DNA of 63,668 nucleotides, counting the filler, from Hyphochytrium catenoides (lineage: Eukaryota; Protista; Hyphochytriomycota): the NCBI GenBank assembly GCA_900088475.1. It is 21 parts of 21 records of this genome, joined end to end, with 100 filler letters (N's around TTAATTAATTAA, not from the genome) between each part and the next. Parts side by side here need not be neighbours in the genome. Positions count along the whole stretch, not along the records: positions 25,218 to 27,264 come from FLMG01000385.1; positions 27,365 to 34,345 come from FLMG01000394.1; 19 more parts are not named here. One strand, given 5' to 3'. The notes under the pieces are model-generated. The model saw only the letters and a program-made list of their open reading frames with translations. It was not told the DNA's origin and made no database searches. The translations under genes and the position numbers were made by a program. Each line of letters opens with the position of its first letter. Within the stretch, counting starts at the first letter, position 1. Positions 27,241-34,345 of the stretch are shown here, piece by piece.

Positions 27241-28756
27241 TAGGGACTTCTTCCTCCTCATAATNNNNNNNNNNNNNNNNNNNNNNNNNNNNNNNNNNNN
27301 NNNNNNNNTTAATTAATTAANNNNNNNNNNNNNNNNNNNNNNNNNNNNNNNNNNNNNNNNNNNNGCCGAAGGCTGGATTACGCACTAGGAACGTCGGGCG
27401 AGCCCTAGGCGGCGAAGCCTAAAGCTATTGATTGATAAAATCAAACATGGTGTACGCTCCGAGCGATTTAACTCGGGCAATATAGTGAGCCATTCTGTTC
27501 TGTGACCACGGATGACCATCACAGTTCCATTTGAATCTAGGAGGCCGTCCGCGTAAGGATCGTGGGACGCTTTTCCAACAGGCCTATGTTAGGCTTATGC
27601 TGTACTAAGAAGGGCTGTACTGACCGCCCAAGACTATGGGGTTTCACTGTATATGAGGTAGTCCATACATATGTACCGTGGATGGTGAACAGGGTTAATG
27701 TTAGGCTTAGTTTGGCGCCCACTTATGCCACTTCCTCTCTAAGATAATGTTCTGCACCTATGTGGGCGCCGAACTAAGCCTGTCTTTTGTTTTGAGTCAC
27801 ATGTCCCAGGTGAATAAGTGTGGCCTAACGCTCTGACCTATATAGGTAGCTGGGTTAATGCTGCTGCTCTCTTGGATTGCTGCTCACCTATTACCCAGGT
27901 TCCAGCTGGCCCACCACTCCAGTATCTTTCTGTGATTTGTGGGTTTGGCCGATGGTCTATTTGAGGTCATAGCGTTTTTCTAAAACGAACGAGACGAGAT
28001 CATCTGCATCAGTGCTGGTTCGCCTCTGGCTGCTGGCAAGAGGCAGAGCAACCGGCGGAGGACGAGCTGCAGGAGGCGCGGGAGCCATTGCCAAAATTAC
28101 ATATTAGATAATGAGAAGATGGGATTAAGAAAGGCAGCAGCAACAATAGTATCAAGACGAAGAATGATCAGCATCATGGTGGAACGAGAAAGTTGAGCTC
28201 AAGCAAAGAGGCAGTCCGCAAGAGAAAGCAAAGAGAGGCTGCGAGCGAATAGGCAAAAGAACAAGACCATCTCTAATAGCTTAGGGAGGAACGGAAGGAT
28301 AATGACTCAAGGGAGATTGACGGTAGCTCAAGAGAAAAAACAATGGTGGTGGTGGTGGCAGCGCTGCCGCACACCCCTTGTTCTTCTGCTCTCCTCCGCT
28401 CTCCACTTCTATACCTACTGGCGACATAGAGAAGGTATCTGCTGGGGCTGCAGAGGCTCAGGCTACAGCTGCCTATGATGCCTCCAACACCAAAGAGAAG
28501 ACTACAACGAAAAACCTCAGGGTGCAGCCTCTGATGTCCACCTTCTTCAAAGCCGTAGTAGTAGGGGCAGCGATCCCTGCTTCTTCATGTCATGGTATGG
28601 ATAGGACCCACAGAATCATTGGTAGTGAGCACTGCGACCACCGCCAGGTCTTATAGTGAGCGTTACGTTCTTCAAGAACGTTGCTACCTTTCATATATTT
28701 ATAGACATACTGACTATGACCTTGCTTAACAGGAGGCAATAGGCTTAAAGAACGTT

Positions 28757-30335
28757 ATGTGTCTACTCCAGAAGAACGATTACACTCCGACGGTGACGCA
28801 ACTCAGGAACAAGACAACAACGTCGGGAAGAACGAAGTTCAGCCAGAAGAAGACGTTTCATTTACGTTTGTTCATGGGTCCTTGTCCTCTGAAGCAAACT
28901 TATCTCCTCCGCCCGCTCCTCCTAACAGCGGCACCATCTCGGAAGGTGAAGCTCATAGCAGGAGATGGTTACTGTCAGGCTCGAGCGCTTGCAGCAGGTT
29001 TCTCATCGAATGGGACAGGGTATCTTTCATGGGTGGCACTACGGTGTCTAACCAGTGAATTTATGCTAAGAAGTATGGCGTGGTTTCGCCCAACCTGCGG
29101 GCCAAAGTACGTCAATAGCACTACCGTCCGCCCCACAGCACCCGACACTCATGAGGCCCAGGAGGTATATAAGACCTATGCGAGACGCTACAGCCACACT
29201 TTCCCAAGCGTTGTTGGACGAGAAGGATGGGGAACAGATGACACCATTAGGCCTTTCTGCATTCTCTTTCCTCACAGGCCAGTGGTTTTGCTGCAAATGG
29301 ATGATGACAAGGATCAAGTGATAAATGCAATCACCGTCTACAAGCAAAAGACTATTGTTGACAACAGCCAGTTCTCTCTCATAGGAGAGCCACCTCCGCG
29401 AACAACAGAGGAGCGCCCAGTGCGCGGTCCAACTGCCTCCAAACTAGCTTTTCTTAGACACTTCCCTACTGCCACTATTGTCCTTCTCTGGAGGGGGCAA
29501 CCACTATGATGTGCTTCTAAGCCAAGAGGATCTCGCCAGGGAGTGTGCGGCACCTTCCTCTCTACTACCCAGGCTTGGCAGGGACAAGGTGTGCTTCCGG
29601 CATATCCCTAAAGAGCTGCTCTTTGGACTAGTTAAGCGAGTTCGGCACCTTTGTCCAGCAAACGGTCGTTGTCTCTTCGTCGCGTTTCTTAGAGGTATGC
29701 AGTGGTCCAGTGACCACCACCAGTTAGACGCCTGTCTATCTTACAACGATCTTCTCCTAGACCTGAAAGCCTATGCTGAAAGTAACCAGAACGCGCTTTT
29801 GAGGTTCTTTAGGGACAAAATTGTTGACGCTACCATGCTAGAGTTGGGTTTGACAAAGGAAGAGACCTTCATGACCAGGATATCGGTCATCTTTGACGAA
29901 ATGGAAAGTTTCTACCATACGCCTATTGGTGACCTCATGCCGAATATTCTTGCTGCATGTTATGGAGTATGCTTGAAAATCTACAACCGTATGCCGGGTC
30001 AACCCCTTCCACACATTGTCGACATCGTTGGTTCAGCATTGTCTAGCTACGGTTGCCAGGCTCAAAGCAGCAAGACAAGGATTGGTGATGCCTTTCGTGG
30101 GTCAGTCCTTCCAGCGATCGTTGTGCTGCTAAGGGCTAAAGATCATTACGATTCAACGATATCAATTGGCCATCTTAATGACACTGAAAGAGCTGGCCCT
30201 TCGCTGGGCACTTGCCTACTGTGTCAAGAAGACGTTAGGTTTGGGGACAGCACTGCAACGCCAAATACAATGAAGGGAGGAGGAGGTAGGTGCTGGATCT
30301 CGTCATGCCCAACAATCCTGCCCCCATCTATCTGA
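28757..30335 (+). CDS. Tandem OTU-like cysteine protease (deubiquitinase) domains inside the TIR element; single frameshift in a G run near 29495
   Basis: Domain 1: IAGDGYCQARALA ... EGWGTD ... NHYDVL. Domain 2: CPANGRCLFVAF ... IGDLMPNILA ... DHYDST. Confidence 0.75.
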
Positions 30336-31046
30336 CAACTCTTTCTCCTCCCTGGAGCAGGCAAGCAGAAGAAGCAATCCTTCAACGCATCTTTCCTCCT
30401 TCAGCCATCAATGTCCCATGAGGAGCAGGCACAAAAGAACTCTCCTCTTGACAACACTACAAAGACAAAGAAGAGGCCTGTAGCCACGAAGGATATAAAA
30501 GAAGAGATTCAATCAGGGGCTGCTACCAAGGAAGATTCCAAGTACCCTCCGCAGAAGGTGCAACGAAGGGCGAGTGGGGATCATGGGAATGATGGAGACA
30601 CAAGGGCTAAGAAACGGCAACCAAGTTTCTCTGTTTTCCGCCAGAAAGCAACGCCGATATACCCTTCTCCGGAGACTTCTTGGAGGAATAGGTACACATC
30701 ATCATTTGACGGTGGGCAAATATCTTTAATAGAAAGAGAGAGAGAAACAGCAGGAGAGAGAGATGCAGAGAGCGGGAGGAAGAGAGAGAAAAAGAGAGAG
30801 AGAGAGAGAAGGATATAGGGGGAGAGAGAGTGAGAGAGAGAGAAGAAGATAGACAGAGAGAGAAAATGGAGACGAGGGTAGGGGAAGAGAAAGAGGGAGA
30901 GAGGAGACGGGAGGAGGGAGGGAGAGAGAGGTTGAGAGAGGAGAGAGAAGAGTTAGGAGAAGGATGGGAGATTGAACTTTCGTAAATCGACATCATCACG
31001 ACCTTTTCGTTATTATGTCTTCTAATCTTCTCTTCTCCATTACCAG

Positions 31047-31500
31047 AGAAGAAATAGCAGAGGAAGAGGGAATGGGCGTCTATGTGAAGCCCTACCGGAA
31101 GTTTTCAAGATTTACGTCGCAGCAGCTGAACTTCTTGGAAAAGATGTCAACCTCCACCTCACGGACCCGAAGCAGAATGTGATGTCTCCAGAAGAGACTC
31201 ACAGAAGGATGCTACTCCGATTCAATGAGAGCAAGGGCCCATTTGCGAGAAAGTTCGTTCTTACGGTGATCCAGATTAGGGCGGAGTTTAGCTACCTGGC
31301 TAGCACCAGAAAGGCGAAGAAGGTGAATCTGACCATCCCAGACGAATCTCTAGAAGAGGGCGGAGAAGATCTGCAAAACCAATGAAGAAAATAAAGTGTA
31401 AAAGGAGACGGTTAAATTTTTGACTAGATGATTGGAAGATAGAGAGATCATCCTTGCTACAAGCATAAGAAGCAAAGTGAGTGCTGACTTACGAAGGACA
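31047..31500 (+). pseudogene. Homeodomain-like (three-helix) DNA-binding segment at the 3' end of the TIR element's gene; frameshifted
   Basis: RKFSRFTSQQLNFLEKM ... MSPEETHRRM ... LTVIQIRAEFSYLASTRK. Preceded by a GA-rich intron-like tract ending CCAG at 31046. Confidence 0.45.
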
Positions 31501-32185
31501 ACTTTATTAATGCGAACGGACAGGAATGGAAGAATAGTCATGAGCAGGCCTATATGTAGGAGGAGATAGACATATAGGTGATGAACGATGAACGACCAAT
31601 TTAGATAGTACTTTTATGATTTCGTTTTGCATCTACATTACTTATCTTCATGGGACTATCTACTGATAATAGTACTTGTAATAGATGTAGAGAAGGATGA
31701 TAATAGAAAGGAGGAGAATCAAACAAGACCAATCAAAGAAGGAAGAATCCTCTTCCGTAGCCTCGTCATCATCAACGTCATCATCATGATAAGAAGAGAG
31801 CGAAGAAGGAAAGAATCATCCTCCACCTGACTTGAGTGTTATTTATAATCAAGGAGAGAAGGAGAAGAAGGAAGCCTAATCTCAGGCTTCATTACTATGG
31901 TTTTCATTCTACATTGGTAAAGTGCTGCAGCTTCCCATGGTTCTACTTGTACGAGTACTGTACCCTGCAGCTGGAGGTGGATGTCCCACTCCCCAAAGTG
32001 GGACAATCGGACGAAATTTTGTATTTTTCGTTGAAACTTACGCGGACAGCCTCCTAGAGCTTACAGAGTTCTCTAGATCCGGGGGAGTGTTGAACTGTGA
32101 TCAACGCTGAAACCAAAAAGTGTACAGCGGACGACGCAGAGGGACAATCCCTGGTATATAAACAAAAAACGGAGATTAGTCAAGA

Positions 32186-32266
32186 GTACGTTTGGTGTAT
32201 GATGCATCCTGGTTAGGGTGTCGGCATCAAAGACAGAAATCCTCGGTTCAAATCCCGGAGCGTACA
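32186..32266 (+). tRNA. tRNA-like sequence, probably a degenerate tRNA-Pro(AGG) with an intron or insertion (pseudogene or TE-borne)
   Basis: 7-bp acceptor stem GTACGTT/AGCGTAC; B-box GGTTCAAATCCCGGA; TTAGGG anticodon loop; TTTT shortly downstream. D and anticodon stems are imperfect. Confidence 0.5.
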
Positions 32267-32786
32267 AGACTTTTCTCCGGTATATCCAGAGACCCCCCAA
32301 TATTAATTCAAAGTGCTCATCATCCAATGATAAAATCAAACACATGTAAGCGATACGCTTTTGAATGGTCTGCATACCCGACGAAGATATGGTACTTAGT
32401 GTTAGATTATAAGGGATGATTGGACAATGTCATTAGATGGAAGTGCTCTACGTATAAGCCCAACTGGCGTCCCATAATCTAGAGCTATTCTGACTATGGC
32501 AACTATTCCTACTAAACCCTAAGATTTGGAGTAATAGATATTCTTAGATGTTGACTTGTGGGGTACTTGGGAAATTGGAAAGTGAGATTAGAATGAAGTG
32601 GGGGCCGGACCAGAGGAGGCGGCCTTACTGGCGTCCGAGGACTTGGATGCCTCACAGCCACTCATTTAGATGGTGGTCTATCGCCATACATAATACTAGC
32701 AGCTAACTGTGCTAACTTGTAATGGCGATATCTCAGCAACTAGAAAGAGTTAGAAGCTGAGATTTGGAGAGTATAATGACCGTCAT

Positions 32787-34345
32787 CTAAAAACGAGGCC
32801 AAGGAAGACCCTTGGTCAAAACATCAGCCGTCATATCACACGATATGGTGAATGTCAGCTTGATACTCCCAGACGTTACCTTTTCTCGGACGACGCAGTG
32901 CTTGACATCGATGTGCTTGGACTTGGGCCGAGCCATCTCGCAAACCGTGATCGTGCTCTTGTTATCCTGATAGATCTCTATTGGTCCCTTCTGAGGACAT
33001 CCTAGCTCCCCCAGAAGGCACAAAATATGATTCACGTGCTTGGTGGCCGCCCAAAGAGAGATGCATTCCGCCTTGGTCGAAGAAGAAGCTGTGAGTTGCT
33101 GCTTCAGCAACTTCCACACGAAGGCGCCTTCAGCCAACGTGAAGTAGTACCCTGAATTGGACTTCCTATCCGAGGGGTCATTGGGCCCAGTCAGCATCCG
33201 CAAACGCTTTCAGGCATGGCATACTCTTTCCCCCAAGAGTCAAACCTAGGTACTGTGCCCTTCAGTCGCTTTACAGCCTTCCAGTGCACGATTCTTGGCG
33301 TTGACGTGTGCTGGCTTACGGACTGTACCACATAATCAATGTCGGGCGGGTAATGACCATAAGGTACATAAGACACCCTACGGCCTCCCGGTATGGTATC
33401 TGGCTCAGAAGCTCTCGAGTCTCTGGGGCAACTGGAATGTCTCGTCCCTTCGGCAGGTATGACTTCGGGGTCACTGGTAGCGGACTTGGATGGCAGTCAG
33501 CCATGTTGAACCTCTCTAGAATACTACTGATGTACTTTGGCTGCGACAGTGTTATGGTCCTTGCTGTCCTGTCACGATGTACCTTGATCCCGAGGAAACA
33601 GTTGAGTTCCCCGAGATCCGTGACCTCGAACCTATCCGAGAGGATCTTTCTTCATGCCACTAACAAGAGCTGTCGACTCTTCTATCAAAAGTAAGTCGTC
33701 GACAACCAGAGTGATGGTCTCTGGCAGCTTGGAGCCAGTCCCAGTGCGGTGTCGATATACATACGAGGTTCACATATGGTAGGGTGGAATCCGTGCTTCT
33801 TCAGATACCCGTCAATCACCTTGTTCCACTGCCGTGGACTCTGCTTCAGTCCGTATATGCTTCTCTTCAGCTTGCAGACATGATCTTGAGAATCAGCACG
33901 AGCAAATCCAGGAGGCTGCTTCATATACACAGTTTCTTCCAGCTCGCCGTGCAAGAAAGCAGTCTTGATGTCCTTATGATGAATCTCCCTGTCAAACGAT
34001 GCCGCCAATGACAGGATGCACCGAATGGATTCATATCCGATTGTCGGAGCAAACACTTCTTGATAATTGACTCCCTCCTTCTGCCGAAAACCTTGTGCCA
34101 CTAACCTTGCCTTGTATCTCTCTACAGTCCCATCAGCGTTGGTCTTGACCTTAAAAACTCAGCGGCATCCCACAATGTTTGCTCCACGAGGGCGGCGAAC
34201 CAGTTCCCATCCCCCGTGCTGCTCCATGGAATGTAGCTCGCTGGAGATTGCCTCCTGCCACTCCACTGTCTGGGGAGAGGCCAACGTGGCTTTTAAAGTT
34301 GTTGGAGTCTGAGGGCACAGCTATGTGGACTACAAGCTGGCAAGC
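32787..34345 (-). mobile_element. Ty1/Copia pol fragment (RT plus RNase H), degenerate
   Basis: YKARLVAQGFRQKEG, DIKTAFLHGEL, LKRSIYGLKQSPRQW, PYREAVGCLMYL, YQDNKS, SKHIDVK, ADVLTKGL; several frameshifts. Confidence 0.95.

Follow-up and report, generated by a model that had tools for sequence, protein, structure and literature searches.

The stretch of DNA analysed here (the window, 63,668 nucleotides with filler, joined from 21 parts of the Hyphochytrium catenoides assembly GCA_900088475.1) contains, in the part taken from FLMG01000394.1 (positions 27365-34345 of the window), a 4,513-bp element at 27541-32053, which is probably a non-autonomous cut-and-paste DNA transposon carrying, instead of a transposase, a gene with two tandem and highly divergent OTU-type domains. 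The element is a real, low-copy cut-and-paste transposon, delimited by 17-nt terminal inverted repeats (TIRs) and flanked by a target-site duplication (TSD).

The whole part was read, and Logan contigs from three of the organism's DNA runs (X1-X3) were placed on 27365-33360. The repeat finder returned a single long inverted pair, with arms at 27536-27557 and 32037-32058 (22 nt, 95% complementary); this arm length includes palindromic flank, and the 17-nt core matches at 16 of 17 positions. Because CTAG is palindromic, the sequence alone is compatible with a 4-bp duplication, a longer TIR and a TA duplication alike. In the Logan contigs, a joint 27536->32054, at which 4517 nt are skipped and four letters fit either side, was present in 3+1+1 contigs across X1-X3, with one CTAG retained. 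Two further diverged empty-site paralogues (27530->32054 and 27540->32080) each had one CTAG with a short mismatching filler. These empty-site contigs are uninterrupted paralogues of the high-copy repeat that hosts the element, not the same locus, and since they carry one CTAG, both the insertion and the 4-bp duplication are established. In metagenome elements with an identical 17-mer, described below, the A of TTAA precedes GAGG, which places the start of the window element at GAGG and identifies the four bases CTAG as its duplication. Inverted repeats located exactly at the ends and a duplication read against uninterrupted sites are those of class II, subclass 1, cut-and-paste elements, and the TIRs and CTAG duplication claimed in the initial annotation of this DNA were both confirmed. 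The heptamer GTGGGAC occurs only three times in 27365-34345, always within 70 nt of an element end, and may be part of a transposase-binding site. A hairpin with 23-nt arms (91% complementary) and a 33-nt loop was also observed at 27703-27781, about 160 nt inside the left end. The string TAGGCTTA was found exactly at 27590, 27702 and 28740, with a one-mismatch form, CAGGCTTA, at 27775 on the minus strand; strings of this type are candidate subterminal repeats whose enrichment is not significant (10 matches compared with 4.9 expected).

The two domains of the carried gene showed motifs typical of OTU proteases. In domain 1, GDGYC (Cys codon 28973-28975) is followed by WGTDD and NHYD (His codon 29502-29504), with 176 residues from Cys to His, and the segments are in the OTU order: a strand, GDGYC..RA, the GWGTDD loop, a strand pair, a hydrophobic strand and NHYD. 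In domain 2, ANGRCLF.A (Cys 29670-29672) is followed by VVLL...DHYD (His 30144-30146) 158 residues on. The order and spacing of the OTU catalytic Cys loop (DGxC type) and His motif (HxD) were found in both domains, and 0 of 5,000 shuffles matched the Cys/His motif-pair pattern, a pattern written after seeing the data. In the Atlas, domain 1 scored 0.93 and shared 184 features with OTU clusters, which made up 64 of the 100 clusters nearest to it; domain 2 scored 0.79 to Peptidase_C65 (otubain)/OTU clusters, which was rated a lead only. The Cys-loop and HYD motifs, together with these protein-language-model neighbours, make the OTU assignment probable, strongly for domain 1 and weakly for domain 2; we consider an OTU fold very likely for domain 1 and somewhat favoured for domain 2.

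Stop-free runs of 259 and 295 codons, far above chance for 4.5 kb, were found in the element, and the carried gene is a frameshifted, multi-exon gene of about 830 codons in four exons, with predicted splice sites (Table 1). Three in-phase GT..AG introns can be drawn, in agreement with the spliced gene first proposed; the gene is, however, not intact. Two frame changes are not explained by introns, one near 28938-28945 and one at a G5 run (29493-29497), the second of which cuts off the His motif of OTU-like domain 1 from the rest of that domain. Inspection of the sequence revealed no GT..AG intron in the right phase that bridges the frame change near 28940. Contigs of the three runs are identical to the window over 28545-29526, so the frame breaks lie in the sample DNA unless all runs share one platform bias. 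With at least two frame changes, the window copy cannot encode the full protein. Downstream of the domains, the KTKKRP and RAKKRQ stretches of the basic linker look like nuclear localisation signals (NLS), and tandem AG/AG acceptors of predicted intron 3, at 31046 and 31048, choose between tail frame 1 and frame 0. The GA-rich microsatellite of this intron (30730-30960) had a word depth at least 100x that of the surrounding element and is common to many loci; high depth extended over 30565-30964.

Table 1. Features of the element and of its immediate surroundings, in window positions.
Feature	Positions	Strand	Basis
Very high-copy host repeat, left half	27365-27536		contig word depth
TSD, left copy, CTAG	27537-27540		read in sequence; empty-site contigs with a single CTAG
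Left TIR, GAGGCCGTCCGCGTAAG	27541-27557	+	repeat finder
Subterminal motif GTGGGAC, left	27562-27568	+	motif count
First recognisable exon, open frame, with QPLMSTFF	28327-28594	+	frame analysis
Predicted intron 1 (GTATGG donor, CTGAC branch-like site, AACAG acceptor), in phase	28595-28732	+	sequence and frame analysis
Acidic low-complexity linker, exon part	28733-28940	+	frame analysis; frame changes near 28938-28945
OTU-like domain 1, split by the frame change at the G5 run 29493-29497	28943-29510	+	motifs and Atlas
OTU-like domain 2	29640-30170	+	motifs and Atlas
Predicted intron 2 (GTAGGT...CAG), in phase	30286-30360	+	predicted from sequence
Basic linker exon with KTKKRP and RAKKRQ stretches	30361-30691	+	frame analysis; no Pfam match
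Predicted intron 3, with GA-rich microsatellite	30692-31048	+	sequence, repeat finder, frames
Last exon (tail), stop codon 31383-31385, no recognisable domain	31049-31385	+	frames; Pfam
Subterminal GTGGGAC, inverted pair, right	31983-32004		motif count
Right TIR (reverse complement GAGGCTGTCCGCGTAAG)	32037-32053	-	repeat finder
TSD, right copy, CTAG	32054-32057		read in sequence; contigs
Host repeat, right half, and further high-copy sequence	32058-32760		contig word depth

The contig joints showed about three forms of the element in the genome, the full one and two internal-deletion derivatives. In X1, the full form corresponds to a 982-nt contig (depth 18.4), the sole contig over 28545-29526. 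One deletion form (28462->29929, depth 26.4) skips 1,466 nt with the filler TACA, and the other (28574->29439, depth 12.9) skips 864 nt. The depths of the three forms total 57.7, compared with a summed depth of 57.4 beyond the deletions, which indicates about three forms, of which only one keeps the whole coding region. Other joints skip 511 nt (31452->31964) and 61 nt (27937->27999). Variant contigs diverge by 2-5% from the window, and since their changes are equal across codon positions with symmetrical transitions, the copies decay neutrally. As the gene is broken and the other two forms have lost most of it through internal deletion, the locus is a decaying copy and not a working gene. Such deletion forms are what abortive gap repair of a DNA transposon would be expected to leave, and the non-autonomous or deleted family proposed at first reading was recovered in the contigs as a small family.

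No transposase-sized open reading frame (ORF) was found in 27541-32053, the stop-free stretches outside the OTU gene being low-complexity and at most 165 codons long. Pfam scans of the element gave no rve match and, together with the ORF scan, no Rep/helicase relic. DDE_Tnp_1_7 was matched neither in the element nor in its TTAA relatives (Pfam), which, like the GAGG ends compared with CCYT, does not fit piggyBac. In the Logan contigs of X1-X3, no transposase was seen in any of the roughly three forms, and no longer copy was seen. The earlier remark that the element has no visible transposase agrees with these results.

Elements with the same terminus were found elsewhere. An exact scan of JGI/ENA metagenome contigs with the terminal 17-mer GAGGCYGTCCGCGTAAG returned at least 120 loci. 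About 50 of the matches listed are in GC-rich, bacterial-looking contigs with unrelated context, on a rough estimate a number of the order expected by chance. At least 67 other loci (L004-L118; e.g. L081:5941-5957 and L094:1991-2007) have related subterminal sequence and belong to the sample series OMLO01, Ga0126337-43 and Ga0099803-10, which we take to be coral-holobiont metagenomes. Among the matches listed, TTAA directly precedes the 17-mer in 60 of the 67, and the outer flanks are unrelated; the loci are independent insertions of TTAA-targeting elements. Their terminal 17-mer has C or T at position 6, and the elements end exactly in GAGGCTGTCCGCGTAAG. At least three subfamilies (L081-type, L094/L110-type and L013-type) have only the first ~19 nt in common, so the terminus is conserved above the family level. 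The right end of the window element and the main metagenome subfamily also have the strings AAATTTCG and CGATTG in common. A very high copy number of these elements is suggested by the metagenome contigs, which usually end 55-120 nt into them.

Homologous reading frames were found in L094 (interior 1991-4679) and L081 (interior 1-5957), with transposase-like pieces at L094:2473-4678 and L081:2797-3918. The frames resemble a DDE-type transposase, with the blocks IIDWAM..., LRSDEA.CYHN and DFSEP..GKD in L094, and have a weak SAP-like C-terminus (E 0.2). Neither protein had a Pfam or a PDB match. In the ESM Atlas, both fell into unnamed animal clusters (molluscs, rotifers, cnidarians) with weak ISAzo13/DDE_3/rve (RNase-H-type) structural neighbours, and the protein is probably a DDE-like transposase, either of Sola3 type or of another unmodelled superfamily. 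By tblastn, no relic of this coral-type transposase was detected in the window, and the window proteins had no relative in the metagenome loci. The stretch ERPVRG(P/T)TA at 29411-29437, in an insert of OTU-like domain 1, matches the coral-type transposase (L094 ~3660-3690) at 8 of 9 positions (tblastn E 0.49 in a 7-kb search); this match, the sole protein-level echo between the window element and the coral-type element, is probably due to chance. In addition, L081:18-1108 contains tandem repeats of about 75 codons, with SSKPSVQLFNPCPFHCKPRPSRVSLESLGL in the units and open frames. The 17-nt terminus, common to the window and to TTAA elements of unrelated samples, provides a handle for the partner transposase and for the shift of target from TTAA to CTAG.

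From these data we propose that the 17-nt ends, and perhaps also the subterminal GTGGGAC motifs, would be recognised by a transposase whose gene lies elsewhere. The element would then be excised and integrated at a 4-bp palindromic N-TA-N site, here CTAG, duplicated on insertion. The gene product would consist of two tandem, divergent OTU-type cysteine-protease (deubiquitinase-like) domains, an NLS-like basic linker and an unassigned tail. By analogy with the OTU proteins of Ginger1 and Helentron transposons and the ULP1 proteases of Mutator-like elements (MULEs), the product of an intact ancestor may have worked in trans on transposition, repair or silencing at steps that depend on ubiquitin. 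We infer that the gene encodes an OTU protease and is either an accessory or a passenger of the element. The GAGG terminus in common with TTAA-targeting DDE-like elements supports a non-autonomous, Sola3-like reading of the whole.

Several observations weigh against this proposal. At E<=1 and at E<=10, no open frame matched PF02338, PF10275 or any other Pfam family; in these profile searches domain 1 lacked its His strand, which the frame break cuts off. No OTU match was found in the PDB with phmmer for either domain. An exhaustive phmmer search of the ORF 29478-30335 against 1.84 billion protein representatives gave 0 matches, and a word-indexed search of 5.8 billion proteins with this ORF and the OTU1 piece gave no homologue. 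The AlphaFold check of the OTU fold suggested in the initial annotation was run on single sequences of both domains and led to unusable models (pLDDT 32 and 38), for want of an alignment. The two OTU-like domains read at first are thus present as motifs, and the first of them is probably real, but neither gained support from profiles or from fold prediction. Concerning the transposon itself, CTAG and the TTAA of the relatives share only the central TA, the name Sola3 is tentative, following a general description of that group rather than a comparison with Sola3 sequences, and the partner transposase was not seen in this organism. All splice sites are predictions from sequence. A single insertion site was inspected, and the other forms may have arisen by independent transposition or by segmental duplication.

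Among the other explanations, the one that survives best, which we nevertheless regard as doubtful, is that the OTU gene is a captured host gene or a Helentron piece, a passenger without role as in Pack-MULE-type transduplication. In the relatives that share these ends a transposase is present and no OTU was detected, two of the three genomic forms persist despite deletion of the OTU region, and the introns are like those of a cellular gene. Helentron OTU ORFs do exist, in a study that also mined Phytophthora infestans Helentrons (PMC4067079), and oomycetes are the nearest named relatives of the copia element neighbouring the window element. However, introns are common in transposon genes too, as in Ginger1 (PMC2836005), and as the databases searched yielded neither a cellular nor a Helentron homologue for either domain, the donor cannot be named.

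We consider it unlikely that the domains are not OTU proteases and that the gene codes for an orphan transposon protein of another fold which happens to contain [DN]GxC and HYD motifs. This would agree with the empty Pfam, PDB and large-scale protein searches listed above and with the low Atlas rating of domain 2, whose low-confidence model is all-helical. The two domains showed no significant similarity to each other by BLASTP or MAFFT, where their Cys loops were not aligned, and a scan of IMG/VR with the OTU1 piece gave no relative. Against it stand the Atlas neighbours of domain 1 and the arrangement in OTU order of the Cys loop, the WG..D loop (domain 1) and the hydrophobic strand with HYD, over 158-176 residues, which the shuffled sequences did not reproduce.

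A more elaborate scenario extends the tandem-OTU reading with a docking peptide. The initial annotation had described a canonical PIP box, and QPLMSTFF (28525-28548) does fit the PIP consensus Qxx[ILM]xx[FY][FY], with a chance expectation of 0.023 per protein of like composition. It is, however, a bare motif match: the first in-frame ATG of its exon falls within the motif, the only in-frame start upstream is a TTG, and a second consensus match, QNALLRFF, is found in the middle of OTU-like domain 2, where a docking peptide is unlikely. The claim of a replication-fork-targeted protein is unsupported for the same reasons. We consider it very unlikely that the element belongs to a Sola3-like lineage whose transposase was replaced by a nuclear tandem-OTU deubiquitinase docking PCNA via an N-terminal PIP box and aiding transposition of the family in trans. 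If it were so, the protein could, for example, reverse PCNA or histone ubiquitination at gap-repair sites or blunt ubiquitin-dependent silencing, the element would be a parasite of its autonomous relatives that pays with an accessory enzyme, and the domains would form an orphan OTU branch for which 1.84 billion protein clusters offer no detectable relative. Two other features of the protein were not retained. The tail, first described as homeodomain-like, matched neither the homeodomain nor any other Pfam family at E<=10, whichever open frame was used, and the frame change needed for this description is made unnecessary by the tandem AG/AG acceptor, which permits a tail that excludes the FTSQQLNFLEK string. 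The supposed CLLC pair is a lone CxxC with no partner ligands.

It is highly improbable that the element is autonomous, with the OTU-bearing protein or part of it as its transposase. The OTU gene is the sole long reading frame and no longer copy was seen, but outside the two OTU-like domains the protein has no room for a DDE/RNase-H core (~160 low-complexity N-terminal residues, a 109-residue basic linker and a 111-residue tail), which excludes this reading, and the elements that share these termini rely on a distinct DDE-like protein that has left no relic here. A non-autonomous, rolling-circle element of Helentron/Helitron2 type, suggested by the OTU ORFs and subterminal inverted repeats of Helentrons (PMC4067079), is scarcely tenable, being excluded by the 4-bp duplication seen in the empty-site contigs and by inverted repeats at the very ends, while the same terminus bounds TTAA-flanked DDE-like elements and no Rep/helicase relic was found.

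The element sits in a very high-copy repeat. The word depth of the three runs was 4,655 / 63,808 / 444 at 27365-27536 and up to 21,196 / 268,595 / 2,883 at 32058-32760, compared with 18-80 / 220-1,250 / 1-19 within the element; depth in the host repeat thus reached up to ~1,000x that of the element in the three runs. Many contigs jump back from ~32231-32335 to ~27433-27486, and the sole internal feature found in the host repeat was a 15-bp direct repeat, TTGATAAAATCAAAC, at 27433-27447 and 32328-32342. No tRNA (ARAGORN) or SINE-type RNA (Rfam) was detected in the host repeat on scanning the whole part, despite a T-arm-like string at ~32250; the repeat may be a satellite, a SINE or a MITE. A degraded Ty1/copia element follows on the minus strand (32787-34345), with an RVT_2 fragment (E 2.7e-39), frame changes and RNase H/integrase-side fragments. 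Its best named relatives are oomycete proteins (53-59% identity), and closer matches (77-92%) were found on anonymous 1-kb ENA metagenome contigs.

Proteases of the ubiquitin system recur in unrelated transposon classes, as OTU in Ginger1 and Helentrons and as ULP1 in MULEs. The view that deubiquitination aids DNA transposons would gain weight from a third, independent case, and a protease gene alone in a transposase-less element of another superfamily would be a clean system in which to study the protease apart from the transposase. This significance is lowered by the broken state of the window copy, by the tiny size of the family and by a protease assignment that is probable rather than proven.

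Compared with known systems, the window element is closest at its ends to Sola3. The Sola superfamily, including the Sola3 group, was reportedly described by Bao et al. in 2009, and Sola3 elements have GAG-type termini and a 4-bp TSD that is usually TTAA. By this definition, the window element resembles Sola3 in its 4-bp TSD with a palindromic TA core and in its short TIRs starting with GAG (GAGGC...), and its same-terminus relatives insert at TTAA and encode a DDE/DDD-type transposase without Pfam model. The window copy differs in its TSD, CTAG instead of TTAA, and in having no transposase. The Sola-like affinity guessed at first fits the GAGG terminus, identical to that of TTAA-targeting DDE-like elements, with Sola3 as the closest group; the element itself has no Sola3-type DDD transposase. 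The cores of Sola, Zator, Kolobok and Academ have no Pfam model, according to work on fungal transposons (PMC5751038). Sola3 has been reported as abundant in an oomycete, Phytophthora sojae (PMC11139960).

The suggestion that an OTU domain had not been described in a cut-and-paste element does not hold, as the OTU domain of Ginger1 (PMC2836005) and the OTU ORFs of Helentrons (PMC4067079) are published; OTU genes are also over-represented in rust fungi (PMC5295586). The new aspect is how these features come together: within a non-autonomous element of a Sola3-like group, a gene that stands alone encodes OTU-like domains that are in tandem and very divergent. Ginger1 has a C-terminal OTU domain on a Gypsy-integrase-like transposase, 4-bp palindromic TSDs and, in some elements, introns (PMC2836005), and in the same way the window element combines cut-and-paste ends, a specific 4-bp palindromic TSD, an OTU-like cysteine-protease domain and predicted introns. 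Ginger1, however, ends in TGTNR, with TIRs of 40-270 bp and CCGG or CCGT as target, whereas the window element has GAGG ends and CTAG, two OTU-like domains and no integrase. Helentrons likewise carry, on a DNA transposon, a separate OTU-like protease gene thought to help transposition (PMC4067079). Unlike the window element with its exact terminal TIRs and 4-bp TSD, they are rolling-circle elements with Rep/helicase/endonuclease and no TSD. The KI-MULEs of Arabidopsis, which are transposase-less MULEs with ULP1-like protease genes, offer another parallel: they too are TIR elements present in few copies, with no transposase and with a cysteine-protease gene of a ubiquitin-like-modifier system. 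They differ from the window element in belonging to the Mutator superfamily, in their 9-bp duplication and in carrying a ULP1/C48 protease rather than OTU.

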